NCBI GenBank assembly: GCA_002794465.1 | Contig: MTSL01000219.1 | Location: forward strand, 95,322-127,321 | DNA: 32,000 nucleotides | DNA from: Paramicrosporidium saccamoebae KSL3 | Lineage: Eukaryota > Fungi > Cryptomycota | Direction of reading: 5' to 3' | Part shown: positions 3,597-27,690 of the stretch, piece after piece | Numbering within the stretch: the stretch's first letter is position 1 | Layout of the letters: each line of letters opens with the position of its first letter | Translations under genes and position numbers: made by a program | Notes under the pieces: generated by a model | What the model saw: only the letters and a program-made list of their open reading frames with translations | Told to the model about the DNA's origin: nothing | Database searches by the model: none

Positions 3597-4896
3597 ATGT
3601 CCGTTCCCGAGCTGTCCGCCATTGACCGCAAGCGTCTCGATTTTGATTTTGAAAAGATTTGTTGCGTCACTCTCTCGCCAGTCAACGTGTATTCTTGTTT
3701 GACGTGCGGCAAGTTTCTGCAAGGACGGTCGCAGAACAGTCCGGCGCATCAGCATTGTTTGAGCGAGGGACATTCGTTGTATATCAACTTGGACACCAAA
3801 AAGGTCTTTATGCTGCCCGAGAATGAAGAATTGGATGATCCTCAGCTGGAAGATATTAGGGTATCTGGTGGTGGGTGGCTTATAGTTGTAGTATGCACTG
3901 TATCCAACATTTGCAGACACAAGCGTCTTGGATAGGAATATATTGGAGGGAATAGACTTGCATGGAAGAAAATACACGGCCGGCTTTATCGGCCTGAACA
4001 ATATCAAAGCCAACGATTATGCCAACGTCAGTTTGCATGCCCTCCTGCACATTACCCCCATTAGGGACCTCTTTCTGTCAGTCGACTTTTGCAACTCGCC
4101 CTCAGTCCTGCTCCGGAACCTTAGTAGCGCTGCCCGCCGAATCTGGAATCCGACACCATTCAAAGCATTACTTAGTCCGCATGAATTCATGCAGGCCGTA
4201 AACCTGGCCAGCGATCGACGGTACTCGATAAACAAACAGGCGGATGTGTTGGAATTTATGGCCTGGCTGTTGAATACGGTGGGGAGGGATCTTGCCGCTC
4301 ATCATTCAGTGGGATTGGTGACGGAGAGATTACAAGGACGAATTCAAGTGTCCACCAAACAATTGAGGCCGACAGAGATGACAACCATGCTGGATGCGAC
4401 ATTTCAGAGCAAAACGGTCCCGTTCTATTACCTCAGCCTGGACCTGCCTCCCGTGCCGTTATATCAGTCGAGTTCTGGTGAATTTGCCGTTCCCCAGGTG
4501 CCTCTGGAGCAACTGCTCTCCAAATATGACGGAGGACAGTTAAGTCAGCGGGGAGACTTGCTGCAAGCATTTTCATTAGAGGGATTGCCCGAATATCTGA
4601 TCCTTCATTACAAAAGATTTGTAAAGACCCATCTGATATGGGAAAAGAATCGGACGATTGTCTCTCATCCATTAATAGGATTGCCAGTTTTAGACTCGAA
4701 AAAGGACGCACACCACTACGACATTGTCGCCAACATTTGCCATCGTGGAGAGGCGGAGAAGGGACACTTTTTCATCCAACTGCTACATCCAGCCACGGGC
4801 CATTGGTACGAAATTGACGATTTAATGGTGCGCCAGATGCCGGCCGTCAACATTCCCCTCAGCGAGTCGTACATGCAAATCTGGCGACGTAAATAG
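3597..4896 (+). CDS. SAD1: U4/U6.U5 tri-snRNP-associated pseudo-deubiquitinase Sad1/USP39; exons 3597..3860 and 3892..4896 (422 aa)
   Basis: ZnF-UBP LDFDFEKICCVTLSPVNVYSCLTCGKFLQGR. Cys box GLNNIKANDY has Asp in place of the catalytic Cys, as is typical of the family. A 31-nt intron at 3861..3891 (GTATCT...TTGTAG) restores EDIR-YALYPTF. Confidence 0.93.
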
Positions 4897-4953
4897 AAAT
4901 TAGTTATTTTGGGTTTTTTGATCCGTTAAAAGCCATGTTTATATTAAGGACCC

Positions 4954-5060
4954 TCTGTGGATGTGATACTCTCCCAGTCTGTAAATTTCATGCTCTCCTA
5001 GTTTGTAAATGTTATGCTCTCATGGTCTGTACATGTTATGCTCTCATGATCTGTGGATGC
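4954..5060. repeat. Degenerate 24-bp tandem repeat, about 4.4 copies, between SAD1 and the first SDR
   Basis: Units tctgtggatgtgatactctcccag / tctgtaaatttcatgctctcctag / tttgtaaatgttatgctctcatgg / tctgtacatgttatgctctcatga / tctgtggatg. Confidence 0.85.
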
Positions 5061-5124
5061 CATAATCCATCACTCATAATCCCTGGCCCGTAGGTATACT
5101 CTCACACACCTTTACAAGAGCTAA

Positions 5125-5871
5125 ATGAAAACGGCAATTGTCACGGGAGCGTCTCGTGGGATTGGAGCAGCGGTTTGTCGAAACTTGCGGACCAAAGGCA
5201 TTCGAGTTATTGGGGTGGCGCGTTCCGAGGATGCTTTGCGTAAATTGTGTATGGAAAAGATTGGCAGCGGACCTATGGAGTATGTAGTGGGCGACATTAC
5301 AGACCCAAAGACTGTAGAGACGGCCGTAGCACTTGCTACCAAAGACGGGAATCTCGAAATGCTCATCCTCAATGCGGCCATCCTTACACCAATGTCCAAG
5401 ATTGATGTCACAAAGATTGAAGAATTCCAACGGGCCTATGATGTGAATGTATTTTGCAATCTCGTCTGGATCCAGGCTGCACTCCCAGCGCTGCGTGCAG
5501 CCACCAAGGGAACGATCGTCTATGTGACCTCGGGAGCCTCTGATATTGGCGTGGGTGGGTTAGCTGCATACGGAAGCAGCAAGGCGGCTATGAACTCAGT
5601 GATGCGTGTGCTGGCCGAGGAGGAGCCGGAAGTTATCAGTTTGACAGTGAATCCGGGACCCACCGGGACGAAAATGTGGAACGAGTTCCTTGATCTTGCC
5701 CCGACGACAATGGATGCCGCTCAAATGTCTCAGTATGCAAAGATGGGCAAGGATGACGTAAATAAGCCAGAAGACGTGGCCGAGTCGTTTGTAAGGCTTG
5801 CCCTTTCGGCACCCAAAACGAAATCCGGGTCGATCATAGCCTGGGATGAATCCTGGATTCAATCTCTCTAA
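5125..5871 (+). CDS. Classical short-chain dehydrogenase/reductase, probably NADPH-dependent (YIR035C/IRC24-like), 248 aa
   Basis: TGASRGIG cofactor motif, VARS (Arg after beta2), catalytic Ser in YVTSG, YGSSK. Confidence 0.9.
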   Translation: MKTAIVTGASRGIGAAVCRNLRTKGIRVIGVARSEDALRKLCMEKIGSGPMEYVVGDITDPKTVETAVALATKDGNLEMLILNAAILTPMSKIDVTKIEEFQRAYDVNVFCNLVWIQAALPALRAATKGTIVYVTSGASDIGVGGLAAYGSSKAAMNSVMRVLAEEEPEVISLTVNPGPTGTKMWNEFLDLAPTTMDAAQMSQYAKMGKDDVNKPEDVAESFVRLALSAPKTKSGSIIAWDESWIQSL

Positions 5872-5920
5872 TACAAGAGGGGTCGGGCTGTGAATGTAAA
5901 GGTTATTGTTATTATAAACA

Positions 5921-8505: not shown

Positions 8506-10453
8506 TCAACGGTCTTGGAGGTGCGTGTCTAGTACTCGGAATAGAACAAAATCAATTTGATTTTGACGGAACACGGCATGCCAATTGCGCTGGGCATCGG
8601 ACAGACGATCGTTGGTACTCTTCACCTCTACCAGTCGGTATGCACTACGGTCTGGTCGATACAATAGTAGATCAGGAAGGCCTGCGGAACTGTGACCATA
8701 ATCTTCTGCCAAAACCCGAAGGAGGGGTGATAAAGCCGGTCCCAACGCGTGGCAAATATCCAATAAGGCATCCAGGGGATATTCTTCCCACAGGACGCCC
8801 AGGGCCTGACAGCCATAAAAAGGATAATATGAATCAACAAGCAGCTGAGGAGCCGCTCCCTCGCCAATCTGCGTCAGACGCGTCTCAATGGCCGTCTTTC
8901 GCACGCGATAAAAAGCATCGGTGCTGAGGTCGAGGGGGGCAGTCTGATAGGGTGTCTGGAACACATCGGGAGTATCTCCATACAATATGTCCCAGAAACA
9001 GAGGGCAAATAACATGCGATAAACACGCGATTCGCAATGAAAACCACGCCAGCCTTGATCCATAAAATGCTCCAGGACTAAATCTTCTACCGAAACAAGA
9101 ACATGCTGTTTGGAGAGATACAATAGCTTACGACCCGTAGTGCGAGTCGTTTCAGGGTCCGCATAAAGGGTCACCGTTTCGGGTGGTTCGTCCAGATCAA
9201 AGGACGTATGAGTAAGCTTACAAAGTCTTCGTTGTAGGGCGATGCGACTACCGGTGCGCACGTGAATGTCTTCCAAGGCCTCTTGACACTTTTTCAATGC
9301 CTCAGTCTTGCCGCCAACATGAGTTGCCAAATTGAGCACAAGTCGCTCCCACCATTTGCCACGATAACCCAGACAATAGACATCCTGACCAAGCAAAATC
9401 TCCAGGATGCGGTTGGCTTCCTTATGGTTTTTGGCCTTTTCCAGGAAACCTACCAACGACGTCAGCATTCGTGTATACACCCAACCCGCAGTATATCGTC
9501 GTAGAAAGTACGAATGCACCGTCTGTCCCGCTGCGTAGCTACTCTTCCAGTTCTCCAATACAGCTGCCAGTAGATCGGGCAGCAGATCGTCTGTCTCATC
9601 GCCTGCCAACATTTCGCTGACCGTCTTTTCGTATCGGATGGCCTCGTCATATGCAATCCAATCCGAACGACTGGAGAACACGGGCCCACTCTTTACCAGA
9701 ACATAGGGCGGATATCTCTTTCTATTGAGGTCCGTCATAATGGCTGTGCTAAGATTGTTCTCTTCCTGTGCGGTCGAATCCAGAAAGAATAGTCCAAAGA
9801 TCCGTCGTAACGATTCAATGGCCATCGGTGGGATGCGCACCACCGGGCCTGCAAGACCTCGACCCAGCTCCATAATGCGTTCCGTCGCTTCATCGGCAAT
9901 GGATTTCCTCGTCGGTCCAAAATTCAGTCGCTTTTGCTTTGATCGTCGGGTGGCCAGGATCTCGTGCCGTATCCGTTCTCTGTTCAATGCCGAGCCCAAT
10001 TGTAATCTCAAGCTTTTGGCCAGACTCCTAAGTTCCTCCAATTGCAGAATATCCAGCATTTCTTCCGGTTCGGTGGGCTCCACTGCATTAATTAGAAAAA
10101 TAGTGGATCTGCTTACGTTCGACCAAATTGGCCTCGGCTAGCACAGAGACGGCAGTGGGACAATTGCCAATGTCCTTGTACTCTAATCTATCCACTCGGA
10201 ACCATCCAATCTTTCGCAAATATAGCCTAAAGAACATGCGTTGTGCATCTCCCTCTAGTCTTTGTATCCTTGCTACCAATCCAAGTTCCTCCTCGAGCAG
10301 AATATTGCCGTATGCATCCTCCACTGCTGTCAATATGGCCAGCAGGCTTTTCTGATAATATGACAATGACGGTTCATATTGTGTGAGTTCACGAGACTCG
10401 TAGAATTCATGAGACTCGATGTGGGATTCACTCTTTTCATGGGGTGTATTCAT
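8506..10453 (-). CDS. FAN1: Fanconi-associated nuclease 1 (VRR-NUC); exons 10453..10117 and 10082..8506 (637 aa)
   Basis: RLYLRKIGWFR, YRGKWWERL, GWRGFHCES, APLDL, and an intact PD-(D/E)xK core GLPDLLL...VEVKSTNDRLSDAQ. A 34-nt intron at 10116..10083 (GTAAGC...CTAAT TAATGCAG). Start set at the first in-frame ATG. Confidence 0.92.
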
Positions 10454-10500
10454 GCTTGCAACCCGCCTATATATACGCAATTATATCCATAAATATACTA

Positions 10501-10604
10501 GTAGTTATCCCGTAACCATCCCCGTAGTTATCCCCCGTGATTATTCCCGTAGTTATCCCCGTAATTATTCCCGTAGTTATCCCCCGTAATTATTCCCGTA
10601 GTTA
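10501..10604. repeat. Tandem repeat of 11-13-nt units with a 24-25-nt higher-order dimer; G-tract-rich on the minus strand
   Basis: GTAGTTATCCCC(C) alternates with GTAATTATTCCC; about 8.5 units. Confidence 0.92.
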
Positions 10605-10691
10605 CGCTCGCTACTCTCCTCATTAATGCACTCATTACTTCACTTATTACTACACTTGCTGATTGTCTACAGTTTATATGATATATGCACA

Positions 10692-10952
10692 TTACACTCC
10701 TCCAAAGCTGTTTCGTCGTTGCAGATTGGCATGGGCCCGAGAAAACAGACCAGGCAACGACTATGCAATTAAAACACGACCGTGGTACAAGGTCCATTTG
10801 GTGGGTCACCAGATTGTTGGCGGTGGCATAAATGACCAAATAGGCCGCCAGGATAATCAGTAGGGCGATTCCCGTGTTCTACGCAGTCACAGTGGTGAGA
10901 GGGGCGGTACCCAATCCATGCTTGTCGACCACTCTTCCGAATCACACCCCAT
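10692..10952 (-). CDS. Hypothetical single-TM microprotein (55-66 aa); exons 10952 or 10919..10911, 10878..10789 and 10760..10692
   Basis: Two intron-shaped segments (10910..10879, 32 nt; 10788..10761, 28 nt; both GTACC...TAG, phase 0) join an open frame containing GIALLIILAAYLVIYATA. No family recognised. Confidence 0.4.
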
Positions 10953-10985
10953 GCGATAAGTAACAACTATCCTCGTCTGTAATGC

Positions 10986-12248
10986 TCACGATTCCAGGAC
11001 ACTGACGGGTTGTATGTTGTCGGGAGGGTATTGGAAATGCGGCCCCAGATTGAGTTGTACACAGGCACCACCATAGACGGAAACTGCCGGATAGTATTTT
11101 GCATGGTATATGGATTTGAAGGCGGAGCCGTATTGTTGACCATTAACGCTGAAACTGATGCTTCCCTGCTCCAAAATGTCCTGTCGCACATGATACTGAC
11201 CAAACTTGAAGGGCGGATATTCTTCTTCAATTTCTGCTCGAAGATGTTCTGCAAATTGCGGCTGTTCGACGGATGGAATATCGAGAAGAACACCAATGAC
11301 GGCACCAGAGAGGATGGGTGCGGCATAAGGTTTGGGACGGCCGCAATGCACAGAAGCTCCGTCTGAGCTGCAGATAGCATAGCCATATTCGTCATAGCCC
11401 ACAGATGCCTGAGTGGCAGCCAGGATCTGAGCCAGTCCTACCCGTACATGGCCATCCTGTGGTGTATGAAATGTAATCTCAAAATACCATCGTCCTCCAC
11501 GATCGATTCCGTGGGTGGTTCGGGCTACACGATAGCCTCCATCACCCCCCACATTCCATTGATCAATGCGCAATTCAGGAGCAGTGTGGGTGGGGAGACG
11601 AGAGATGCTGACGGGACCGGGTGGATTGGGACGATCAAAGTCCAAATTGCTAAACACAAAGGACGCCGCTAGCTGACGCATTTGTTTTCTTAGCCTACGG
11701 GCCTGTGAGGACGCCTCATTGTCCTGTTCTGCCTCTTTGCGACGAGAACTGGCCCGCTGTAGCGGTTTGAGGGTTCCGTCTGGAAGGATTTCGTAATCGG
11801 CCTCCCGCGTCTGAACTGCCTCTACCTCGGACGGTGGCACCTTATCAATGAGCGTCCAAAAGCCGTTGAGAGTACGGCCCAGCTCTTTGCCACTCTGAAA
11901 ACGTGTACCCGAATAAGTGGATAGGGCAGCCACTACGGATGTCTGCCAATTGCCGCTTCGGTCACGGTCCCACAACAGTCCCCAATACTGTTCGATTTCG
12001 TCACAAATGCTGCGCCAATGGAAAAACTTGAGACCTTCAATGCTGTGGGCTGAGGGATGGGCCTCAATCAACTGGTACAGCAACAGGTGCACCACATCCA
12101 CCCAAGTGACATGCAGACGCGCCAAAGTCTCTCCCTCACCACACTCATTGCACGTGTATCGGAGGAATGAGTCACACGGCAAAAGGGCCAACGCACAAAA
12201 CGCACTGTCTTCTGTCACCTTTCCGCATTTGTGACACGTCAATTTCAT
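10986..12248 (-). CDS. ASH2: COMPASS (Set1) subunit Ash2/Bre2: atypical PHD plus winged helix and SPRY, 420 aa as called
   Basis: N-terminal CxxC...CxxC followed by TWVDVVHLLLYQL and NWQTSVVAALS. SPRY motifs GYRVARTTHGI, WYFEI, VGYDEYGY and YYPAVSVY. The 3' end may be extended by splicing (see findings). Confidence 0.88.
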   Translation of the reverse strand: MKLTCHKCGKVTEDSAFCALALLPCDSFLRYTCNECGEGETLARLHVTWVDVVHLLLYQLIEAHPSAHSIEGLKFFHWRSICDEIEQYWGLLWDRDRSGNWQTSVVAALSTYSGTRFQSGKELGRTLNGFWTLIDKVPPSEVEAVQTREADYEILPDGTLKPLQRASSRRKEAEQDNEASSQARRLRKQMRQLAASFVFSNLDFDRPNPPGPVSISRLPTHTAPELRIDQWNVGGDGGYRVARTTHGIDRGGRWYFEITFHTPQDGHVRVGLAQILAATQASVGYDEYGYAICSSDGASVHCGRPKPYAAPILSGAVIGVLLDIPSVEQPQFAEHLRAEIEEEYPPFKFGQYHVRQDILEQGSISFSVNGQQYGSAFKSIYHAKYYPAVSVYGGACVQLNLGPHFQYPPDNIQPVSVLES

Positions 12249-12316: not shown

Positions 12317-14319
12317 ATGAAAAGAGAGTCGCAGTCCGATATAGGGCGAATCAGCGGATCGATTGGGGGCTATTGTGGAATGGGATTGTTGCGCTTCATA
12401 GCCATCCCAGTGAGACGACTGCTTCATGACGACACACTTGCAGGCGCGATCCTGGAAAAGGGCACGTCTGCCTCCACATTGTGGGGCGTCTTTTCGGAAC
12501 ACGCCACGGTATGTTCTGATGGGTAATTGTTGATCGATAGGGTGGCTCAGTGTGGACCATTGGAGCAATCGTAGGTGCGGCCCTGGCGTTGGTGGCAATG
12601 CTCGTGGGGTTATCCTTTGTGGTTATCCCGTTTCAGACGCTGCGCAATTGGCAGAAGCGACGCATCGGCGGTGCTGCGCAGACACGTCGATTTCAATTCT
12701 GTTGGCTCGTTCTGTTGGGTGTGGCGGTAGCAGTGACAGCTGACGCGGTATGGAGCAATGTCACAGCATTTGGATTATATGGCGGAGCGGAGCAGACGCT
12801 AAGAATGATTGATACAGTCCATAGCCACGCCGGCGTTCTAACAAAGGCCGCCTTGGCCACGGAACGGTTTGTCACTGGCATCCAAGGCTCTGTGATCAGT
12901 GCTGCCACAGGTGGAAAGGATCTGCAACCCGCCCTCAAACTCGTCGAGGAATATGCCACCGATGTTGATTCATTTGCTAATTTCCTAAAATATAACGTGT
13001 CCTTCCTCACTGAGCGGCTGAGCGACTCCCAGCTGCCGAGTGATAAACTCCAGACGATGCAGCAGATGCTCAAAGATGTGGGCGACAGTGAGGCTCTTGG
13101 AAAGCTTGCAAAACTCTCCGAGGCAATGAAAAATATGCGTGGCGAGACGCTGAATGGTCTCGGAAACCTCGCCAGTTTCTGGCCCGACCTCGAGCCCACG
13201 CGGCTGCACATTGTCGAGTTGGGTGAACGTCTGCAGAGCACCGAGATGGTTCGTTTCCTGTGGGTATTTTTCGTGTTATTCCTCTTTGTCGGAATTGTAG
13301 CCGCAGGACTGCAATTCTTCCGCATGAAGCGTTTCCGTATTGTCATGTGCTGCATGACAGCTGTTGCATTAATGCTGTCCCTAATGTATCTGGGTCATGC
13401 CTTCCATTTGGTCAGCGGCACATTGCTCGGCGCCTTTTGTGATGCATTAACTGGCGATGGCACACAGAAGCCTCTCCTGTTGCCCGTCTCAGATACATTT
13501 TCGCTCGACCTGGCCAAGGTAAATCACATGGCCAGCAGCTGCAGTGCCGGCCATGACATGATGAGTGCTCTACTGAGTGCCTATGCTACTGACGATAAGC
13601 AGCTGCAGAACATTAATCCACTTGTCACATTGGATCCACGGGCACAGGAGGTCATTATCAAGACGCCGTTGGCCACGGTTAACTTTGCCGTCAAGGACCG
13701 ACAGGTAGACTACAAGGCCGCGTTAGACAAGGCAGTTGATGGATTCGTCTCAACCACTGCCGACCAAGTTGGCAAACTCAATGCCACATCCGTCAAGAAG
13801 ATGGTGGAGGGTGCTCAATTGCTGTCCGAGTTGGACTATAGCGGACTCACGGACACTTTGCAAATGCTCAGTCTCCTCCTCGCCACTGCTGACAGTGTGT
13901 CCTCGCCTGTTGATCTGATGCTGAAAAATTTCAAGGTTACTGCCCGTAGTCATATTGACCGGATCAAAGCACTCCTTGCCGCTCTGAAGACCCAATCGGC
14001 GACCATCTATCCTGCCGCCAAGGCTCTCTCTCTCCATCTTGATAATGCACAACAGAATCCCACCGAGTTTCTTGCGGGTCTACAACGTACCTTAAAGGCA
14101 GACGTTGCCCAATTTGTGGCCGACACGTTACAGCCTGCCATGAACTGTCAGAAGACTGGTGCGGTTGTAGAGGGTGCCTTTGGTACTGTCTGCTCCGCAG
14201 CGGGTGCTCTCCAAGCACTCTTTTTGGCCTTTGGGATCCTCATCAATATGGCCATTGCGTTTTGTATTATGCTGCTTATTTGTAGAAAGTTTAGCGATAT
14301 CCATACTGAGGCTGAATAA
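12317..14319 (+). CDS. Five-TM Tweety/prominin-superfamily-like membrane protein; exons 12317..12508 and 12541..14319 (656 aa)
   Basis: A 32-nt intron at 12509..12540 (GTATGT...TTGAT CGATAG). Five hydrophobic helices in 2+2+1 arrangement with two large loops. Motifs EMVRFLW, IVMCC...GAFC and C...C...LQALFL resemble TTYH and prominin. Start codon uncertain. Confidence 0.65.
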
Positions 14320-14513: not shown

Positions 14514-16551
14514 CTAGTAACACAGATCGGAGGGCTCTATCCGATCATGTCCTCGTCCAATGGCACAGAGAGCCGCTTCTTGGATCAGCTGTTTCAAATC
14601 GGCACCCGAAGATCCCACAGTATTATCGGCAATGGCTCCCAAATCGATACTTTTGTCAATGGGGGTGTGCTGGAGGATCTTTTGAAGAATGTCTAACCGA
14701 TCATTGCGTTCTGGGAGGGGAATATGCACCAGTCGGTCAAATCGGCCCGGTCTCAGTAGGGCAGCGTCAATGGCGTTCAATCGGTTAGTGGCTCCCAATA
14801 CCACTACTCCCCGCATCGTCTCAATGCCGTCCATCTCGTTTAGCAGAGTGGAGAGTACTCGTTCTTGTACCATGTCGCCGTGTCCTCTTTTCCCCACTAG
14901 GGCGTCTACTTCGTCAATAAAGATAAGCGATGGGGCCGTTTGACGGGCACTAAGGAACACTTGACGCACCAAACGCTCCGCTTCGCCCACATATGCCGAG
15001 AACACGGCGGCTCCGCTGAGAGAATAGAAGGAAAAGGAGCCGCGACTGGCCAGGATCTTGGCAATGGTCGTTTTGCTGCATCCCGGAGGACCATACAGGA
15101 GTACTCCACGGGGCTGCTGCAGGCCGAGTCTTGAAAAGGCCTCTTTATGTTGCAACGGCCATTCAATGGCTCTCTGAAGCTCCATCTTGATAGTTGCCAT
15201 CCCTCCCAAATCATCCCAATCCAGACCGCCTTCCACTGGCACTCGGTATTCTCTAATCAGAGAGGGAGTCATCCCCGCCAGTGCTTTGTTAGCATCATCT
15301 CCAGTAATCCGTACAGTCCTAGTAGACTCATCTTGACTACCAATTCCTCCACCTTTTCGCTTTACACATTCCAACACAATTGCTCTTGTCAGAGCTGCAA
15401 GATCGGCTGCCACATATCCAATCGTTCTTTTGGCAAGCTCTTCAACAAGCGCAATATCGACTTCAGGAAGCATGTTCAGCAACATGGTTTGTCTCATTTC
15501 TGTATCAGGTGGGTGGATGACAATCTCACGGTCAAATCTACCAGGCCTCCTCAGCGCTGGATCTAGGACATTTGGTCGGTTTGTTGCGCCAATAATAAGC
15601 AAATTACCTCTTCGGCCCTCTGCTCCGTCCATTAGAGTCAACAGCTGCGCGAGCAAACGGACCTGACTCTGATCAGATCCCGAATCTCTTTTGCATCCAA
15701 TAGAGTCCTAAATATTTAGCAAGATGGGGAGTTTACAATCTCATCCAAGAATAAAACACAGCACTTGTGGGCGGCCGCATCTTCAAAAACTTTTCTCAGA
15801 TTGGCTTCGCTTTGTCCCAGTAGGGGAGAGACTATTTCTGGTCCATTCATAACCACCAACGGCACGTTAAACTCTCTGCACAAACATCGTACCAAATGTG
15901 TCTTTCCTACTCCCGGCGGGCCCGACATGAGTACCCCGCGTGGGATATTCCAAACTCCCTTTAGCACTGCCACGAGCATCTCTCTCAACATGGAATATGC
16001 TCCATTATCGCTAACGTTCAACGACTCCCCCTCCTCCTTGATTTGGATTTCTATACATGTTGCTGCATCAATTGCACGCGGCTCCTCTGAATCACACTCT
16101 ACCCTTAGTGCTTCACTCAACTGACAGCCATCCCAAACTAGCCGACCAAGCAAATCCAGACGGTCCACGGTAGAGTTTAGGATAATCTTTGAAATGGCCG
16201 GTGGGGCTTTGCACCATATTCTTCCTACTGCGCAGAGGCCCTCCTGGATTTTATCACCTTTCCTCCCCTCATATGAAGGGCTATGTAGTTGAATAAATGA
16301 CTGGTGCAGACTGACAGCTGGAAACGGGTGCACCATATAGACCTACGTTCAATGAACCCTATTGCCTCGCTTACCTTGTCATTTGTAACTAATTCGATAA
16401 TGCTTCGATTATTAACAAGTTGCTTGCCTAATCTCCACCAGAGAGCCGGTGGCAAATATGCTCTTCCACAATGGGCTATCCCCGAATCATCAAGTACTTG
16501 ATATGGGTAATATTCATCCATTCCTCCATCCTGGTCACTACAACTGCGCAT
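14514..16551 (-). CDS. AFG2B: Double-AAA ATPase of the AFG2 family, SPATA5L1/AFG2B-like; exons 16551..16375, 16342..15737 and 15707..14514 (658 aa)
   Basis: D1 PRGVLMSGPPGVGKTHLVR, D2 GPPGCSKT, and VQERVLSTLLNEMDG resemble SPATA5L1 more than SPATA5. Introns 16374..16343 (32 nt, GTAAGC) and 15736..15708 (29 nt, GTAAAC) restore LFLDEI-DSI. Confidence 0.8.
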
Positions 16552-16689
16552 TTACTAATCCTCGACTGCACAGCAAACCTTTGACTTTACGCCGTAATCT
16601 TTGACACGGTATACATTAAATCTCATTACTATCATGGACCTTCAACCTCAGTGTTGAACACACATGTTTATTAACATTCACAATGAAAA

Positions 16690-17526
16690 TTATAGTGGAG
16701 TGGTTGATTGCGCCTTGTTTGCAATCAAATCATTCACTGCAATGACTGCCCTCGCCAATGCACTCACATACACCATGGCCATTTGGTCATTTGTCTTTAC
16801 AGTCAGCGCCATCTTGGACGTCCGACTGTGCACATCAGGCAACAGGTTAAACATGTCCTGTGCCCCACCCACAATCTCCTGACGAACCGGAAGTCGGCCC
16901 TCCACTACGGCCTGCAAATAGGCATCCAAGTCGCCCAGCTGTGCATCCAATTCTGCCAGACTTTTGATTTTCGTGGAAACGGCATGAGTCAACGAGCCAG
17001 AGGGTCCACGAAGGTCGCGCAACAAATGCTCCACACCTACTGCTTCCGGTTCGTCAGCCTCGAGGAATGAGGGGACATGGGCAAAGGTGGGCGGCTGGGA
17101 CGGATCCTCCTGCAGCGCATGATATGCCTGAACGGGCATTCCTCCGCTGCATTTGGCATCGATAATGCAGAGAACAGGCGACGTACAGTATTCGCGAAGA
17201 GTCGTGTGGATCTTTACATCCGAAGCCCGCAACTTTGGCCCGCTGTGATACCATCCCACCGGACGCTCCTTTGCATTAATCTTCTTGTACAACTCACTCA
17301 TGTTCTCGAGGTAATTATGGTCAAGATACCAGACAGTCGGGTCCGCTTCGTTCTCCTCAAACGGCACGGCATACGAATTGGTAATGTGGACCGTGCGTCC
17401 CGTCCAATTTCCCAGCAGAATCCCAACCACCCGTTTTCCGGGTCCGAGTGCGGCCCTCTGGTAGTGGTCCACCACAGAAAGCAGCACCAGTGGATGGACG
17501 ATAACTTGTTCCGGTGCGACTGCCAT
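16690..17526 (-). CDS. RPN8: 26S proteasome lid subunit Rpn8/PSMD7, 278 aa
   Basis: VIVHPLVLLSVVDHY, RVVGILLG, NSYAVPFEE, VGWYHSGPKL. The charged C-terminal tail is absent. Confidence 0.95.
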   Translation of the reverse strand: MAVAPEQVIVHPLVLLSVVDHYQRAALGPGKRVVGILLGNWTGRTVHITNSYAVPFEENEADPTVWYLDHNYLENMSELYKKINAKERPVGWYHSGPKLRASDVKIHTTLREYCTSPVLCIIDAKCSGGMPVQAYHALQEDPSQPPTFAHVPSFLEADEPEAVGVEHLLRDLRGPSGSLTHAVSTKIKSLAELDAQLGDLDAYLQAVVEGRLPVRQEIVGGAQDMFNLLPDVHSRTSKMALTVKTNDQMAMVYVSALARAVIAVNDLIANKAQSTTPL

Positions 17527-17564
17527 CCGATATGTTTAATACAATTATTCTTTAACCTGATTTA

Positions 17565-18536
17565 TTACGTCTTGAGGGTTTTTTGGTGATCCCGAACAAG
17601 TCGCTTGTAGAATGACTCCAAAACTAACGCCAAAAACACCACTCCCACGCAGAGCCACTGGGACAGTCGCATCCGATGCTGGAACCAGAGCAGACTGAGT
17701 AGGATGGTGAAGAGCTTTCTGGTAACAGTGATGGTCACCAGAGAAAGGGAGCCGAAATGTTCGAGAGTGTAGAAGACGAATACCTGGCCAAGGGCGCCGC
17801 AGAGACCAAAGAGGGCCACATCTCCCCTGACGGTGGGATAGTTGCGGGCAAAGGCAAGGGCCGCTGAGAATTCGTGATTCCACGGATTCAGAAGGAGATA
17901 CAGAAAGAGAAAGATGGACGAGAACAGATGCATGAAGAACATCATCTGCGGACCATACAACCGATGGTCAATAAACATCTTGTCCTGCCAGCTATTTGTT
18001 GCTCCGTCCACCATTAAATTAATCAGCAGCAGGAGTAGTCCGTATAGAGAATTGGCCCCGCCTCGTCCTCCCTCCTTCTCAAAGAGCATGAAGCCAGACA
18101 CACCGGCCGTAATCATGGCTACACTGACATATTTGTACCACTCAAATTTGCGTCGATATACGACAAAGTTCATCAGCATGACGGGGATTAGCTTGCACGA
18201 CTTTCCCAATATCATAGTTGGATAATTGATGTGACGTAGGGCCTCATATCCAAAGGGAGACCCAAGACATCCCGTCAAGGCTACGCGTGCATACTGTTTC
18301 AAGACGGACGGAGAACACGGTCCGAGGGTGCGACGCTGGAGACGGAGAACTGAGTAGGCGACAAAGACGCAGGCAATAGACTGGATGAGGTTGAGAACGA
18401 GGAAGAAACGGAACCGGCCGTGGCTGCCGTCAATGACTGAGACGTAATCAAGAGTGCTGATCCTCTCCTGCAACACTCCCCAAGTCAGGAAGAACAAATA
18501 GATGCCAGCTGCACAGAACAGTAGCTGTCCCACCAT
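17565..18536 (-). CDS. HUT1: UDP-galactose transporter family Hut1/SLC35B1, 323 aa
   Basis: GIYLFFLTWGVLQERI, YEALRHINYPTMILGKSCKLIPVM, DGATNSWQD, GQVFVFYTLEHFGSL, TRKLFT. Start placed at ATG 18536; the ORF-track extension is not family-like. Confidence 0.92.
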   Translation of the reverse strand: MVGQLLFCAAGIYLFFLTWGVLQERISTLDYVSVIDGSHGRFRFFLVLNLIQSIACVFVAYSVLRLQRRTLGPCSPSVLKQYARVALTGCLGSPFGYEALRHINYPTMILGKSCKLIPVMLMNFVVYRRKFEWYKYVSVAMITAGVSGFMLFEKEGGRGGANSLYGLLLLLINLMVDGATNSWQDKMFIDHRLYGPQMMFFMHLFSSIFLFLYLLLNPWNHEFSAALAFARNYPTVRGDVALFGLCGALGQVFVFYTLEHFGSLSLVTITVTRKLFTILLSLLWFQHRMRLSQWLCVGVVFLALVLESFYKRLVRDHQKTLKT

Positions 18537-18640
18537 GGGTGACGTGCGACAGGGGAGGGCGCATGAAGAACTACCGAGTGTTATGTGGATGACTGTGAAA
18601 GAGTGTAATAATGATCCACACATGAAATGCAGTATCCGCC

Positions 18641-20790: not shown

Positions 20791-21978
20791 CTAGAACTTT
20801 TCCAGTTGCGATTTGAACACCTTTGGGTTACTCTCTTGCAAGCGGGCCCTATCGTGGCTCTGATAGTCAAATTTACATCCATGTTGGTCTCCATATCGAT
20901 GTGTCTGGCAATATGTCCCTTCACAACGGCATTTGAATTGCAAAGCGAGTCTGCATTTTCTCCCACATTGTCCACATCGACCCGGAGCCTTGCTTTCTTC
21001 AGCCACAACGACCGTAGCTACGGGTGCTGCCTTTACGGGTGACTCTGGGTCACTGCAGATTTGCAATGATGAGAGGTTACCAAGAGAACGTAGGGGTTCC
21101 TCACTGCTCTCCTCTGTCTCGGCCAGGTCCTCTACTGAGCGTCCTCGTAGATACGAGTCGAGTACAGGAAATGGCAAGTTTGCTGTGGCTACGGAAGGTG
21201 GCAGGGCAATCCTGACCCGGAACTTTCCAGCCGCATTTTCCTCGTCAGAGTCTGAATTCTCCAGCCCGGCTCCCTGTACAACATCATATACAAGGTACTC
21301 TTCTTCATCTACATCCTCAAATCCCAACATGTTCAGCTGTGAAATGCCCGTCGCAGCCTTGACGGTCAGGTTGAGTGTACACTGAAGAGGAATGGGCAGC
21401 TCGTCCAGAAACTTTTCCTCCTCCTCAAACGGAATGGCAAGTCTAGAGTGACTCAACAATTGCATTTCAGGAACCATTCCAATTTTTGCAAAGATGGCGT
21501 CCTTCAAGTCAAAGATGCTAGAGTCCGAAGTCATTCGTATCTCAAAAGGAGCACCCATAAGAGGCTTGATAGTGAAGACATAGTCTTTGGGGGTTGCTTC
21601 GGTGGGGAAAATGCGAGCAATCGGCGCCGACTTGGGAACCGGCACGGCAACTGGTGCTACAGGCCGAGTCTCTACTAATTCCTTAACCGTGATAAGCTCT
21701 TCAGCCACCGTTGGCAGCTCCTCGACTCTCAGTCCAGTCACAGCCCCCGGTGTTTCCTCTCGCGAGCAAGACTTGTTATCCTCAGTCCTCAACAACTTTC
21801 TTTTTACAAGCTCGCCCTCCAGGCCCTCAACCTGCTTCCGCTTCACCCCAAGGACCTTTCTGTTCACTCGTGCTGGGTCCAGTACCGGAATGTCATGCGT
21901 TTCATCAAAAACAGACGCCGTGTCAGAGTCCTCCACGTTTGGAACGGGCGCTGGTCGGCTCTTCTTACGGAGAGTCAT
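20791..21978 (-). CDS. Ubiquitin-like domain plus C-terminal AN1 zinc finger protein (ZFAND4/ANUBL1-like architecture), 395 aa
   Basis: AN1 finger RCGQCGRKCRLALQFKCRCEGTYCQTHRYGDQHGCKFDY. UBL-like FTIKPLMGAPFEIRMTSDSSIFDLKDAIFAKIG. First in-frame ATG at 21978. Confidence 0.82.
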   Translation of the reverse strand: MTLRKKSRPAPVPNVEDSDTASVFDETHDIPVLDPARVNRKVLGVKRKQVEGLEGELVKRKLLRTEDNKSCSREETPGAVTGLRVEELPTVAEELITVKELVETRPVAPVAVPVPKSAPIARIFPTEATPKDYVFTIKPLMGAPFEIRMTSDSSIFDLKDAIFAKIGMVPEMQLLSHSRLAIPFEEEEKFLDELPIPLQCTLNLTVKAATGISQLNMLGFEDVDEEEYLVYDVVQGAGLENSDSDEENAAGKFRVRIALPPSVATANLPFPVLDSYLRGRSVEDLAETEESSEEPLRSLGNLSSLQICSDPESPVKAAPVATVVVAEESKAPGRCGQCGRKCRLALQFKCRCEGTYCQTHRYGDQHGCKFDYQSHDRARLQESNPKVFKSQLEKF

Positions 21979-22432
21979 CAAACGGAAATGTATTTTCGTT
22001 TCAGGGGATGGAGAGATGAGGCTGCGGTTGTTGACCAGGCTGGCCAATAAAAGGTGTCCAGGCCCGGACGGAAGGCTGATTTTAGTTGGTTCGACACATG
22101 TGAACACTTAGGTATGGTATAATGTGAATGGCGTGGGAGAAGAGTAGTTTTCATCAACGTGTGATGGTATAGGCCCTGTAGTAGCCACTGATTTTTCAAA
22201 TAATAGAGGTATTAACTGATCCTTTGCCGAGAAGGAACGTGATTGCCATCACTCAATTTGGGAATTATTCATATCCTATTTATGAGGCTACAAAATGATA
22301 ATGGCAGAGTGTAGCTGTGGTAATCCCATCACATAACGGGTGTAAAACGACTCGGGTCATTCACTACACGGGCTAATTCGACGTTTCTCTAGTAAGACAC
22401 TCTGTTCACTTGATGCATTTTATGGTACATAA

Positions 22433-24809
22433 TTAGCCTATTGGGAGAATTTCCAGAGGAGGGAATATTAACTTTAATCCACGCAGGATGAGTGTTGGGA
22501 TTCTGGCCACAAATATAATGGACACGGCACCAAGCAGGGCTCCCACCGCTAGGAATTGCCGATTGTTCTGAATGGAAATAAAGTGGCTCCTAGACGATCA
22601 GAACATGGGCGATTTTTACCGAGACTTTACACAGGCATGATCGTAGCAAGTCGATGCGGGTTCGGCAACAAAGCTTGTGTCTAAAATTGGTAGGAACAGA
22701 CTATCAATCTTTTTTGCCAAGGCAGCTACTCTGAATGGTTGTGACACATTCTAGACATTAATACCCACACTGACTATACCGTATGCATTGCCGCTGATTG
22801 CACCTTTCCAGCCGCGACATGTTGGGCCTGACAACTCTTCAACAGCCCATCAGTTGTCCTGGCCACTGTTTTTGTCAGTCCATGGACGCGTCTAAGCAGC
22901 ACTAATATCAGCTTCATATGCCCTCTCCACACTATAATCAGTCCCATGTAGTTGCTATCCAGCTCCTTGAGGGTCTTTAGGATGCCTTTTGCCCAGCTGA
23001 TTAGCTTTGGGACCCTAACAAGTACTTCACGCCACGGGGCAGGGAATTCGAGCTTTGCCTCGTTGGAACACTCGGACGCATGATCTTGAAATGTTTTCAG
23101 TAGGATCCGAAGCTTTTTCCCATGTGTAGCAACATTTTGTAGGGCTTTGGCATGTCCTGTGGCATAAAGCTGTCCAACGTCCGACTGCGGAATCGGCAAT
23201 TCCTCGCCGCTCTTCATTTTGAGCTTCAACATGTCCTTTTCAATGCAAACATTGCCTTTGAATAGTTTTCGACTCTCACCAAACACATGATACAGAGTGG
23301 CAACCATATTTTCGTTTCTCTTGCTAGCCCTCAGCAGATTGCTAATATGACGAGTGGTTATTTTGGTACTTGCAATCTGCAGCAGTTCCATTTCGTTCTT
23401 GCTCTCCTTGTCTTTAATTGCAGCACAGGCAGTCAACAAGTCTTCTGCATAACCTTTGGAGTACTCACTTGCAGCCATTGAAAATACTAGAAGGAACCCA
23501 AACATAAAAATGGATCTAAGTACGTCAGAAAACATGAAAGATTTTTTACAGGGCGCCAACGATGGGATGTCCGATCTGTCTCATGGTGATTGCAAAGATT
23601 GCGGCAAAGACGGAAAGTACTCCGCCAAAGATTTCTTTATATGCAGTCATTTTAAGCTGACTGGCCTGTTTCCTAGCTGCGCCGGCCGTTTCCTCCTTTA
23701 GCTTTAGCATGGATCCCTCGAATTGAATCAAGTCAAATTCCGGGAGCATTCCTTGACTCCCCTCTTTTGCCACTAAACCAATCATTAGTCAGCTACCATC
23801 AGTATACAGCTCTGGACAATGTCCATGTCGATGGCTGATTTAAGTTTCTCCTTGTCAACGTTCTTCTCGGGAAGAAACTTTACAGCTTTCCTTATATACT
23901 TGTCCAATTGATCACAACCAGCCACCAAAGAGCTATTCATCTTTTTCCAGTATGCACCAAACGCGGCATACACATTGACCAATCTTTGCAACGAAATATC
24001 TTTCCTCTTATGTACCTGCGCGCCTTGGGCATCCATCTGTATCCGGAATTGCAAATCATTCATTGTTGCAGCCAAATCTTTGTACTTGGAGTTGACTCGA
24101 GAGAGCTTGGAGGTAAGAGCTGTGGTGTTGTATAGATGGGTAGAGTAGTGATGGGCAGCAGAGACACCTTCTTTACCTAACAAATCCATGTAGCTCTCCA
24201 ATAAAGAGTCATTGATTGAATGCAGTGCGCTGTGGATACCACGACCACGAGTCTCGATTGAATTGACAAGCGAGTCGAGCTGCAAGGCCACCTCATCAAA
24301 GTTGATCCCGAGAGCTGTGCAATCTACGTGAATCTTGATTGAGTAGAGACTATAAAATCCAGCAAATAACAAAAAGTGTACCAAATTATGCCTGATGCAA
24401 CTATGAGAACAGCAGAGGAAATCACAGTAAATATTGAAGCCTTTTCTCTTCCTTTACTCTTGTCACTTCCAAACTTGATACCCCAAGTGGATGGTTTCAA
24501 AAGGTACCTCAGACTATAGAAAAGCCCAAAACACACCAGAATCGCTCCAACTGTGACTAATATTGTCTTGCCCTATAATAGTGAACAAAAATAGGGTTGT
24601 GATACGGGATTCAAAGCAATCCATCCAAGTAGTCTGTACAAGATGCGCAGTACCTTCCACATGATGGCTATCTGTGGCTTCAGCCAGCGCCTATATAGAT
24701 TGTGGCTACTTTGTGGCTGCCTCTCCATATTGTCTTCAGCGATCTTTATCATGAAGTATGGTACTTTCCGCCATAGATTTCTCCAAGCGGAACTATTTTT
24801 GCAAAGCAT
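22433..24809 (-). CDS. Hidden 7-exon, ~727-aa five-TM membrane protein of unknown family; exons 24809..24606, 24572..24382, 24349..23808, 23772..23550, 23515..22780, 22750..22620 and 22589..22433
   Basis: Six GT..TAG introns of 33, 32, 35, 34, 29 and 30 nt, each with the exact phase needed, fuse five track ORFs and two uncalled exons into one 2184-nt frame. The 5' and 3' ends are less certain. Confidence 0.75.
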
Positions 24810-25277
24810 ACACTGGCCTGTACATGACGTTATAAGATAGTGGAATGACCAACTGAGTATTTGTTATTATGCATGTAACGAAATGTGAAAGGAAGAGTCG
24901 GAGATGGGCAACTGAAAGCTTGTCATTTTACCCATGTACCTATGGTTTTGTATCTTCCTCACTACGCGGCAACACTCCCAACTCCCGCCACGCAATAATG
25001 CGAGGCTCTAATCCACAGAAATATCATTATTTCGCCGAACACTGAAAAATTGCTTGGATCCAAAAATCTGTCGGCTTTTACAAACGGTCACTATCAAGGC
25101 CAGTATCAGCTTTTCCAACAGACAAAGGGCAGGCGTTTCGATTAATTTACATGCATTTGCTATTCACCCACATGCAAACCTCTGGACCAGGGATAAAGGA
25201 TTTTTCTATAAACCTCAATCTGTTGCTTATTACAAATCCATCGATTCTTTACAACTGCTCGGCCAGGGCAATAGCCC

Positions 25278-26044
25278 ATGCCGGGTTCCTGTGCTTTGTG
25301 TCGCAGATTCCAAGCTTACTGCGATGGTAAACATCCCTGTAGTCGTTGCATCAAGCATAAACAGACTGAAGAGTGCAGATACGGGCCGATATCCCGCGCA
25401 AACTCCCTGGGCAAGCTCGACTATATTATTACCGCGTGCGAGGAGCGTGAGTATGACTGCGATGCGTCGCTTGCTTATATCCACGAGTATCATAGGAAAA
25501 AGTAGCACAGGTTGAGCGTTCGAATAATGGTAGGTTTTCAGAGCCCAGTATCCAACGCATCTCCGAGGCCATTTATTCCTACATGCCACGCTGTTTGGCG
25601 ATCAAAGATATGATGGGAGAGGAAGGACATGCACAAAGCGAAGGCTTTCTTCAGACTTCTCTTATGGTAGGACGAAGTTTCGGCAAACTAGACAGATAGG
25701 AATACGAGCGGACGATGGCACATTCTAGCGTGCCCTCCTGTGTCATGAGACGTTCTGGAGAGATCTTGAAATGCAACCGAACCTTTCTCCACTTGGTTGG
25801 CCTCACCACAGATAAACTGTTGGACCTGAGGTTCTTTGAGCTGCTCTCCGAGGAGGCCTGCGTTAATTTTTGGGAGCGCATTATTCCATTGTATAGGAAT
25901 ACTGCTGCGGGGGCTCTAGTTACAACGTTAATGTTTCGACGCAACTTGGGAGACCAGGAGATTGAGTGCCTAACTTCCATGTCTGTCAAGCATGATTTTT
26001 ATGAAATGCCAGTGATGGTGGTTGCCACATTCATACCAGTGTAA
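25278..26044 (+). CDS. Zn(II)2Cys6 transcription factor with C-terminal PAS fold (Ert1/AcuK-Rds2-Gsm1 family); exons 25278..25501, 25534..25666 and 25700..26044 (233 aa)
   Basis: CALCRRFQAYCDGKHPCSRCIKHKQTEEC cluster. LQTSLM-EYERTM and PSCVMRRSGEILKCN...VKHDFYEMPVMVVATFIP resemble the Ert1/AcuK C-terminus. Introns 25502..25533 (32 nt) and 25667..25699 (33 nt). An upstream exon is not excluded. Confidence 0.85.
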
Positions 26045-26469: not shown

Positions 26470-27690
26470 TTATACCAAATCGGCCACATTCACGGGCATT
26501 TCGTCAATTTGTGTTGCATAGTATTGCTCAATGTCTCGTAATACATGGACGTCATCCTTGGTTACAAAATTGATGGCAATACCCTTCCGTCCGAACCGAC
26601 CAGAGCGACCGATTCTGTGCAAGTAATTCTCTCTGTTAAATGGCAAATCGTAGTTGAACACGACAGACACCTGCTGCACGTCGATACCTCGGGCCCAGAC
26701 ATCCGTCGTAATGAGCACTCGACTTACTCCTCGACGGAATTCCTGCATGATGGCATCGCGCTCCTTCTGGGGCATCTCGCCGTGCATTGCCGACACTGTA
26801 AAATTTGCCTGCCGCATTTTGTCAGTCAACCAGTCTACTTTGCGTTTCGTGTTGCAAAAAATCACCGACTGAGCAATTGTAATAGTGTCGTAGAGATCAC
26901 AGAGCGTGTCAAATTTCCATTCTTCGCGTTCAACGTCCACAAAGAACTGCTTAATTCCCTCCAAGGTAAGCTCATCACGCTTCACCAGCACCTGGACCGG
27001 CTCTACCATAAATTTGCTGGTTATATCGAGCACTTCCTGTGGCAGGGTGGCAGAGACAATGACAATCTGAGTCTTAGGGGGGAGATATCGGTAAATATCG
27101 TAAATCTGTTCCTTGAACCCGCGACTCAGCATTTCATCAGCCTCGTCCAGCACCAGCATTTTGATGTTTTCAGTACGGAGATTACGGCGACGAATCATGT
27201 CAAAGACACGACCTGGAGTGCCTACTACGACATGCTGTCCATAGTCTAATTTCTTTACATCTTCTCCAACCTTGGTTCCTCCAATACAGGCATGCGCCTG
27301 GACATTCATATAGTCGCCCAGTGCCAGCACAACACTCTGTGTCTGTTGGGCAAGCTCGCGGGTGGGTGCAAGAATGAGAGCCTGTGTTTCCCTCAGTCCA
27401 ATGTCGACACGTTGCAGGACACCAATGCTAAATGTGGCCGTCTTACCTGTACCCGACTGTGCCTGTGCAATAACGTCGCGTCCTCGAATGATAGGGACGA
27501 TGGCACGTTGCTGGATAGCAGAGGGTCGCTCAAACCCATATCCGTAGACACCCCTCAGCAGATCTTCCTTGAGAGCGAGTGCATCAAACGTGGGATACAC
27601 TTCAATCTTTTCACTGGTGCTGAAGCTCATTTTATCCTGGCTGGCATGGTCAATACCGCCTCCCGCCGGGCGTCTACGTACATCCTCCAT
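26470..27690 (-). CDS. FAL1: DEAD-box helicase eIF4AIII (exon junction complex core), 406 aa
   Basis: [27 protein letters not shown]. eIF4AIII-type GGID...[21 protein letters not shown] and [15 protein letters not shown]. Confidence 0.93.

Follow-up and report, generated by a model that had tools for sequence, protein, structure and literature searches.

A seven-exon gene of Paramicrosporidium saccamoebae encodes a predicted, fast-evolving five-span membrane glycoprotein

Gene structure at 22433-24809

The rozellid Paramicrosporidium saccamoebae lives as a parasite within the nucleus of Saccamoeba and is sister to Microsporidia. Here we describe a gene on the minus strand at 24809..22433 (gene B) of a 32,000-nucleotide (nt) stretch of its contig MTSL01000219.1, which we call the window and to which all coordinates refer, together with a gene of similar layout on the plus strand at 12317..14319 (gene A, PSACC_03711). 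Quandt et al. 2017 (PMC5701793) published the genome, and the contig belongs to assembly GCA_002794465.1.

The minus strand of 22300-24950 contains seven stop-free stretches in differing frames, and each of the separators between them starts with GTA and ends with TAG. Splicing out six GTA…TAG segments of 33, 32, 35, 34, 29 and 30 nt yields a single open reading frame (ORF) of 727 codons, from the ATG at 24809 to the TAA at 22435-22433. The first-pass annotation of this stretch had proposed a gene of six micro-introns, seven exons and about 727 amino acids (aa), and all six introns were recovered at exact coordinates, in agreement with the orthologues described below. GTA..TAG candidates of 25-40 nt number 11 in the 2.4 kb of the gene-B coding strand, where the window as a whole averages ~1.1 per kb on each strand; six of the 11 bridge all six breaks of the ORF, each in the correct phase, and this agreement between intron candidates and frame breaks far exceeds chance. 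The GTA…TAG rule matters because a search for any GT..AG path led elsewhere: the 757-aa model that it produced is wrong and is superseded by the orthologue-confirmed GTA…TAG model. Judged from the annotated spans, gene B is plausibly the most intron-rich gene of the window, as had been suggested.

The exons and introns are listed below with the transmembrane (TM) segments and conserved elements that they encode. Relatives are identified as P0008 (an intronless 671-aa orthologue), L009, L007 and L008 (orthologue-bearing contigs), and by further protein numbers where these are needed.

24606..24809, minus strand: exon 1; ATG 24809 in the 727-codon model, with other in-frame ATGs at 24752, 24728 (the choice of GenBank) and 24662.
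24573..24605, minus strand: intron 1; 33 nt, GTATCA…TATAG, phase 0; site and phase common to L009 and L007, with the intronless P0008 colinear.
24382..24572, minus strand: exon 2; TM1 (24566-24510), conserved cytosolic loop motif YSLRYLLKPSTWG (24518-24480) and start of TM2.
24350..24381, minus strand: intron 2; 32 nt, GTACAC…TATAG, phase 2, within TM2; same site and phase in L009, read through in P0008 and L007.
23808..24349, minus strand: exon 3; end of TM2 and most of the helical outer loop 1, with the RGRxxHxALxSLNDS motif and an invariant N-D-S sequon (24213-24205).
23773..23807, minus strand: intron 3; 35 nt, GTATAC…TTTAG, phase 1, splitting a Leu codon (T|TG); same codon and phase in L007 and L009, read through in P0008 and L008.
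23550..23772, minus strand: exon 4; end of loop 1, TM3 (23638-23582), 6-aa inner loop and start of TM4; a separate 67-aa gene in GenBank.
23516..23549, minus strand: intron 4; 34 nt, GTAAAA…CTTAG, phase 2; same site and phase in L009, read through in P0005/L008, L007 and P0008.
22780..23515, minus strand: exon 5; TM4, then the greater part of outer loop 2 including conserved Cys codons at 23427-23425, 23070-23068 and 22833-22831; the 234-aa gene of GenBank (P0003).
22751..22779, minus strand: intron 5; 29 nt, GTATAG…TCTAG, phase 0; interrupted likewise in L009, read through in P0007, P0008 and P0009.
22620..22750, minus strand: exon 6; unannotated in GenBank; end of loop 2 with a conserved CxxxxC pair (22648-22631).
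22590..22619, minus strand: intron 6; 30 nt, GTAAAA…TCTAG, phase 2; same site and phase in L009, read through with matching length in P0007 and P0008.
22433..22589, minus strand: exon 7; unannotated in GenBank; TM5 (22555-22499), conserved C-terminal motif RGLKLIFPPLEIL (22483-22445) and the stop TAA (22435-22433).

GenBank places three genes at this locus, with products of 242, 67 and 234 aa and none over the last two exons. These entries are what speaks for the alternative that three separate small genes are correct, or that the locus is a decaying pseudogene whose frames happen to be joinable. Against it, the intronless 671-aa orthologue is colinear with the spliced gene-B product, intron positions and phases have been kept while intron sequences differ, the two unannotated exons are conserved at the protein level, and the stretch coding for TM1 has no start codon of its own unless exon 1 is joined to it. 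That alternative has next to no probability left, and the three-gene annotation is effectively refuted. The six junctions can be regarded as verified because intron-lacking orthologues, the conserved positions and phases and the conservation of the two unannotated exons all support them, and it is virtually certain that gene B is one protein-coding gene with seven exons and six micro-introns.

While the exon chain and the stop codon of the first-pass annotation stand, its start at 24809 probably does not. The first 49 codons of the 727-codon model have a counterpart in no orthologue. The sole possible ATG of L009, which has a stop 11 codons before it, aligns with M50 of gene B (MWKVLRILY… versus MWEKLYAAW…), and P0008 has a tail of 13-21 aa ahead of the intron-1 junction. 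On these grounds the true start is probably the ATG at 24662-24660 (M50), which would give a protein of ~678 aa with a 19-aa N-terminal tail; the ATGs at 24809, 24752 and 24728 are less probable starts.

Orthologues, synteny and divergence

Homologues were sought with exon 5 alone (22780-23514, minus strand) in an exhaustive HMMER search of 1.84 billion protein representatives. Beyond the GenBank fragment itself it returned six relatives, all of the same clade and among them the 671-aa P0008, and no paralogue array of gene B was seen. In a word-indexed search of 5.8 billion proteins the full spliced protein had no match, and the family alignment retrieved two GenBank fragments and nothing else. 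Metagenome pattern scans, one each for the gene-A and gene-B families, returned no matches, and no paper mentioning either locus was found in the literature.

On three JGI metagenome contigs (L004-L006), P0008 is encoded by a single unbroken ORF. Its neighbourhood is also that of the window, with RPSA-SF3A3-eIF4A to one side and, to the other, zf-AN1 followed by a choline-transporter-like gene. By tblastn, residues 30-726 of the spliced gene-B protein align with this ORF in a single high-scoring segment pair at 28% identity (E 2e-92). In L009, a Logan contig from run DRR438482, a 704-aa orthologue has six introns (within 3772-5895) at positions and in phases (0,2,1,2,0,2) identical to those of gene B; these introns are 32-44 nt long and their sequences are unrelated to those of the gene-B introns. 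L007, an ENA contig, carries a 690-aa spliced orthologue with two introns only (within 5016-5873; 53-57 nt), one after the ‘HP/NP’ codon, where gene B has intron 1 (phase 0), and one in the intron-3 Leu codon (phase 1), and reads through the remaining four junctions. L008, a partial contig from SRR26282673, shows 50-68% identity and reads through junctions 3, 4 and 5. All 15 introns that were checked (six in gene B, one in gene A, six in L009 and two in L007) have the form GTA…TAG. Gene B is a single-copy gene whose syntenic position (eIF4A, the gene itself, zf-AN1, choline-transporter-like) is shared by at least four uncultured lineages of related rozellids; it is a syntenic orthologue rather than a member of an expanded surface-protein family.

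This one gene also displays intron turnover among close relatives: P. saccamoebae has six introns (29-35 nt), the DRR438482 relative the same six and the ENA lineage two, while the JGI lineage lacks introns here altogether. An apparent lineage-specific intron is present in L008, near codon 518 (~769-808). A 562-aa gene that lies beside the gene-B orthologue in L004 was considered and proved to be an unrelated secreted protein.

The rate of divergence was compared as the identity of window proteins to their orthologues in the DRR438482 relative and in the JGI relative, in that order (a dash marks no match on the contig):

eIF4A: 94% / 88%
RPSA: – / 82%
UAA transporter: 80% / 74%
choline-transporter-like: 72% / 62%
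gene A: 49% / –
zf-AN1: 46% / 33%
gene B: 42% / 28%

No gene in this neighbourhood evolves faster than gene B. Fast evolution had been suggested from the outset, and for gene B this is borne out by an identity of 28-42% where eIF4A keeps 88-94%. The zf-AN1 gene (20791-22107, minus strand) diverges nearly as fast, and the adjacent transporters keep 62-80%.

Predicted topology and conserved motifs

Hydropathy analysis of the 727-aa model, whose residue numbers are used here, gives five TM segments in a 2+2+1 arrangement:

residues 71-89: TM1
TM1-TM2 inner loop: 25 aa, with seven Lys/Arg
residues 115-133: TM2
outer loop 1, between TM2 and TM3: 222 aa
residues 358-376: TM3
TM3-TM4 inner loop: 6 aa
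residues 383-401: TM4
outer loop 2, between TM4 and TM5: 286 aa
residues 688-706: TM5
C-terminal tail: ~20-21 aa

The same 2+2+1 pattern is found in P0008, and the five segments, the four loop lengths and the CxxxxC pair before TM5 are as first annotated. The positive-inside rule places the short loops and the C terminus in the cytosol and the N terminus and long loops outside. This orientation is consistent with an N-D-S sequon in loop 1 that is invariant in all four full-length orthologues, and with the confinement of conserved Cys residues to loop 2. Five such residues are present there: one after TM4, one each in AxxCxxEAxLEFPxxW and LxxxCxAQ, and the CxxxxC pair before TM5; the family alignment contains no conserved Cys in loop 1. 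Conservation is strongest in cytosolic or membrane-proximal stretches: TM1 is followed by Y(S/G)LRxLL(K/R)PSTWG, TM2 opens with SIFT, loop 1 carries RGRxxHxALxSLNDSI(L/M)E at its base, and RG(L/M)xxIFPxLE marks the C terminus.

An AlphaFold model of P0008 is of low confidence, with a predicted local distance difference test (pLDDT) of 59 and a predicted template modelling score (pTM) of 0.35. The predicted secondary structure consists almost entirely of helices: TM2, TM3, TM4 and TM5 run on as very long helices, and a small β insert lies 25-85 residues past TM4. From these features of the sequence, it is well supported that the gene-B product is a five-helix (2+2+1) integral membrane glycoprotein of ~678 aa from M50, with the N terminus and two long, mostly helical loops predicted outside or in the lumen, and the two short loops and the ~20-aa tail in the cytosol. 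It is equally well supported, as a prediction, that loop 2 is stapled by the conserved Cys residues next to TM4 and TM5.

Two other readings of the protein were rejected. An internal duplication relating loop 1 to loop 2, hinted at by a MAFFT misalignment, received an hhalign probability of 0.6%. Weak matches to the pore-forming, ClyA-type proteins PaxB, XaxA, SmhB and AhlB reflect a generic similarity between long helices (template modelling score, TM-score, ~0.1-0.2).

Relation to gene A

Gene A has the following structure:

12317-12508 and 12541-14319, plus strand: two exons of gene A, 656 aa, separated by a 32-nt GTA…TAG intron (12509-12540).

The spliced model is colinear with an intronless 660-aa orthologue, P0002. 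GenBank lists gene A as a ‘partial’ 620-aa gene, starting at 12404 and with a 53-nt intron, so that seven conserved residues are lost. Hydropathy places its TM segments at residues 74-92, 117-138, 303-321, 331-349 and 626-644, leaving loops of 24, ~164, 9 and ~270 aa with Cys in loop 2 only.

The first-pass annotation had noted both the common layout of five TM segments with two large loops and the lack of obvious sequence identity; hydropathy returns 2+2+1 for both genes, and BLASTP of one against the other finds no match. The likeness extends further. Both lie in the same organism and on the same contig, ~8 kb apart, both have short basic inner loops and Cys in loop 2 only, and they evolve at similar rates (49% and 42% identity to the same relative). 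Gene A differs from gene B in its shorter loop 1 (~164 aa), in having four rather than five loop-2 Cys and one intron rather than six, and in lacking the gene-B family motifs PSTWG, SLNDS and IFPxLE.

Profile comparison connects the two families where pairwise comparison does not. With hhalign, the gene-A and gene-B families align with a probability of 32-57%, an E of 1e-4 to 5e-4 and a score of 42-45, over a region that comprises TM3, TM4, the Cys that follows TM4 and the initial 100 residues of loop 2, all in register; a permissive setting extends the alignment from one end to the other. Controls stay well below these values: 40 block-shuffled alignments, with columns permuted within each TM or loop block, score ≤29, the reversed alignment scores 22, and three unrelated multi-pass proteins of the window score 14-21. 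AlphaFold models of the gene-A and gene-B orthologues also share the order of elements after TM4, namely an extension helix, a small β insert and a helical stack leading into TM5. The profiles themselves consist of 2 and 7 sequences, which counts against the paralogy. Convergent topology of the two genes had been left open by the first-pass annotation; the scores above the controls favour distant paralogy, and genes A and B are probably distant paralogues rather than convergent. We consider it reasonably probable, with no great confidence, that gene B is an ancient and strongly diverged paralogue of gene A.

Comparison with Tweety and prominin

The two genes had been proposed to form a prominin/Tweety-fold surface-protein system, and the layout of gene B does match both families. 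TTYH proteins are pentaspan with the N terminus outside and carry a disulfide-stapled extracellular flap (PMC8361169). In the TTYH fold, the TM2-TM5 bundle runs on into a bundle of extracellular helices (E1/E2 + E5/E6). The predicted topology of gene B is the same as that of TTYH, with five TM segments, N-out and C-in, and short inner loops, as judged from hydropathy, Lys/Arg distribution, sequon and Cys. TTYH1-3 (PF04906; 7P5J, 7P54, 7P5C, 7RTT) share with it the 2+2+1 order and the pattern of inner loops, of which the one between TM1 and TM2 is short and basic and the one between TM3 and TM4 very short. Like the gene-B family, TTYH has no conserved Cys in loop 1 and keeps its loop-2 Cys close to the membrane, and its ectodomain is helical and formed from both outer loops, as is predicted for the gene-B counterpart. 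In TTYH1/2, the gene-B family and P0002 (the gene-A orthologue, which represents the gene-A side of this comparison instead of gene A itself), the first loop-2 Cys lies 15-16 residues past TM4 (21 in one orthologue) and the last 13-21 residues before TM5. The proteins differ in that the outer loops of TTYH measure 110 and 122 aa, about half the 222 and 286 aa of gene B, in that TTYH has four conserved loop-2 Cys where gene B has five and a small β insert, and in that TTYH ends in a long disordered tail where gene B has a cytosolic tail of ~20 aa.

The prominin layout set out by Bell et al. 2024, with 2+2+1 TM segments, two large outer loops and two small inner loops of <25-30 aa (PMC11405016), is likewise found in gene B, whose outer loops of 222 and 286 aa and inner loops of 25 and 6 aa were delimited by hydropathy. 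Prominins (PROM1/CD133, PF05478) thus resemble gene B in arrangement, in small inner loops and in outer loops of similar length, and both have loop Cys, which form disulfides in prominins; unlike them, gene B has no signal peptide and only a very short N-terminal tail. Cholesterol binding, localisation to membrane protrusions and the formation of extracellular vesicles are further traits of prominins. A TM5 Trp is near-invariant in prominins (human W795) (PMC11405016). It is absent from gene B, L009 and L007, and P0008 alone has a Trp, at the entrance of TM5.

This absence weighs against membership of the Tweety/prominin class, as do most of the sequence and structure searches. The Pfam Prominin profile PF05478 matched no member of the gene-A or gene-B families at E ≤ 10, and the Tweety profile PF04906 matched none of gene B, gene A, L007, L009 and P0002. 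A PF04906 match in P0008 (E 9.7e-4; 18.4 bits, where the gathering cut-off is 31.8) was set aside, as it covers the TM3-TM4 hairpin only and holins and several DUFs match equally. Searching PDB sequences with both family profiles returned no TTYH at E ≤ 10. In hhalign against an alignment of TTYH1-3 sequences taken from solved PDB chains, the gene-B family scored 21.4, within the shuffled maximum of 22.1. A Foldseek search with the P0008 model had no TTYH in its top 50 (best E 0.058, TM-score ~0.1), no solved prominin structure was among the Foldseek matches listed for either model, and all matches had E > 0.01 and a TM-score ≤ 0.24.

Two of the results obtained for gene A point the other way. 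The gene-A family gives a faint signal against TTYH1-3 in hhalign, with a score of 31.4 against a control maximum of 25.9. With the model of the gene-A orthologue (pLDDT 46, pTM 0.33), Foldseek ranked human TTYH3, TTYH1, TTYH3 and TTYH2 at 1, 2, 4 and 5 of 350,542 chains, and further TTYH at ranks 9, 30 and 33, all of them non-significant (E ≥ 0.03). The low Foldseek scores are attributable to models too poor for a test of the fold (pTM 0.33-0.35). Together with the Cys positions, these ranks and the gene-A hhalign score are hints that lead toward Tweety, not tests of it.

How, then, should the resemblance be explained? That genes A and B both belong by descent to the Tweety/prominin pentaspan class is a possibility that we rate somewhat below even. 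Nearly as likely is a lineage-specific pentaspan family with no common descent with Tweety or prominin, whose topology is convergent and whose ectodomain fold and function would be new, for example in adhesion or interaction with the host nucleus; on its own terms we would call this a substantial minority possibility. It would account for the finding that the exon-5 search returned about six relatives, all from one clade, for the lack of Pfam and PDB sequence matches and for a gene-B family score against TTYH equal to that of the controls, and it sits easily with loops about twice the TTYH length and a five-Cys pattern with a β insert. It explains less readily why TTYH should come first among PDB families in the search with the gene-A orthologue model, why Cys residues should stand at matching offsets next to TM4 and TM5, and why the gene-A family should score above its controls. 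Moreover, with only 28% identity left between syntenic orthologues, sequence similarity to distant kin is expected to have been lost.

Gene B could conceivably also be a diverged relative of PRM1 (InterPro IPR026777, PANTHER PTHR31030), the plasma-membrane fusion protein of fungi. PRM1 hydrophobic segments are more widely spaced than the gene-B hairpins, with their inner loops of 25 and 6 aa, which counts against such a homology. In favour of it are the size of 660-730 aa, the fungal lineage of the organism, two large outer loops and conserved Cys, all of which have parallels in PRM1, a multipass protein of similar size whose Cys are functionally important. The Pfam searches are uninformative here because Pfam has no PRM1 profile. 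PRM1 acts in mating-cell fusion as a disulfide-linked dimer with two large extracellular loops, and its function needs a conserved loop-1 Cys (C120) that lies beside a conserved hydrophobic stretch and pairs with a loop-2 Cys (C120-C545 in yeast) (PMC2868043). Neither the gene-A nor the gene-B family has a conserved loop-1 Cys, and no fungal PRM1 was returned by the exon-5 search of 1.84 billion representatives. We regard this homology as very improbable.

Proposed role

We tentatively propose the following for descent from the Tweety/prominin class. The gene-B product would be a glycoprotein of the plasma membrane, or more generally of the secretory pathway, in which the four core helices TM2-TM5 extend into a long, disulfide-stapled bundle of ectodomain helices. 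By analogy with TTYH, dimerisation would probably take place through the ectodomain. Analogy with TTYH and prominin (PMC11405016, PMC8361169) would also make it more likely that the ectodomain binds or organises membrane lipids and curvature than that it forms a channel. The conserved cytosolic motifs (LRxLLKPSTWG and RGLxLIFPxLE) could engage partners on the parasite side, while the exposed loops would diverge rapidly, as expected at a host-parasite interface. Gene B fits a protein exposed at that interface because its ectodomain evolves fast compared with the conserved cytosolic motifs, and it is a reasonable candidate host-interface protein of an intranuclear parasite.

Taken as a whole, the layered explanation (the gene model, the pentaspan topology, the paralogy with gene A and Tweety/prominin descent) appears to us moderately probable. 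In its most specific form, genes A and B would be paralogues of an unrecognised, rozellid-specific Tweety-prominin branch, forming a homo- or heterodimeric complex that organises lipids or curvature on the surface of the intranuclear parasite and combining prominin-sized ectodomains with a Tweety-like placement of Cys; this we hold to be unlikely. Were it true, two animal families would be linked through a deep opisthokont lineage, and the clade would gain a fast-evolving marker of the host interface. Kinship with Tweety and prominin in the broader sense would, if true, extend the superfamily into the lineage leading to Microsporidia and supply very divergent sequences from which the essential features of the fold might be worked out.

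The correction of the annotation is solid. Three spurious hypothetical proteins of the P. saccamoebae reference annotation are replaced by one membrane protein of 678-727 aa. The errors at gene B and in its neighbourhood show that GTA…TAG micro-introns of 29-35 nt have been systematically missed in this genome, so that counts of orphan genes are inflated and counts of membrane proteins deflated in comparative studies of the origin of Microsporidia. Gene B itself represents an undescribed, clade-restricted and fast-evolving predicted pentaspan glycoprotein with a probable paralogue nearby.

Other features of the window

The order of gene B, zf-AN1 and the choline-transporter-like gene is kept in the JGI and DRR438482 relatives. 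A block of AAA-ATPase, JAB/MPN and UAA-transporter genes (L004 15662-19446, window 14514-18623) is inverted in the JGI relative with respect to P. saccamoebae; in the DRR438482 relative, at least the UAA transporter sits as in P. saccamoebae.

On the other side of gene B, an intact eIF4A ORF lies at 26470-27690 (minus strand). In L004 and L009 a small PAS-domain gene sits between eIF4A and the gene-B orthologue, and tblastn with the 154-aa PAS protein of L009 (Pfam PAS_13/PAS) locates an unannotated counterpart in the window at ~25550-26038 (plus strand; 44% identity, E 4e-42). GenBank has only a 76-aa ORF there, on the opposite strand (25651-25881). A window ORF at 25054-25515, which had been considered as the PAS gene of the relatives, is not that gene.

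At 8506-12248 (minus strand), GenBank gives one 1054-aa gene with ‘introns’ of ~578 nt and with FAN1-type nuclease (VRR_NUC) and SPRY domains. The interval holds two long separate ORFs (8506-10083 and 10986-12248), and the GenBank model may have merged them wrongly. The right end of the window (32000) coincides with the end of contig MTSL01000219.1, so that the assembly may have cut short the last ORFs.

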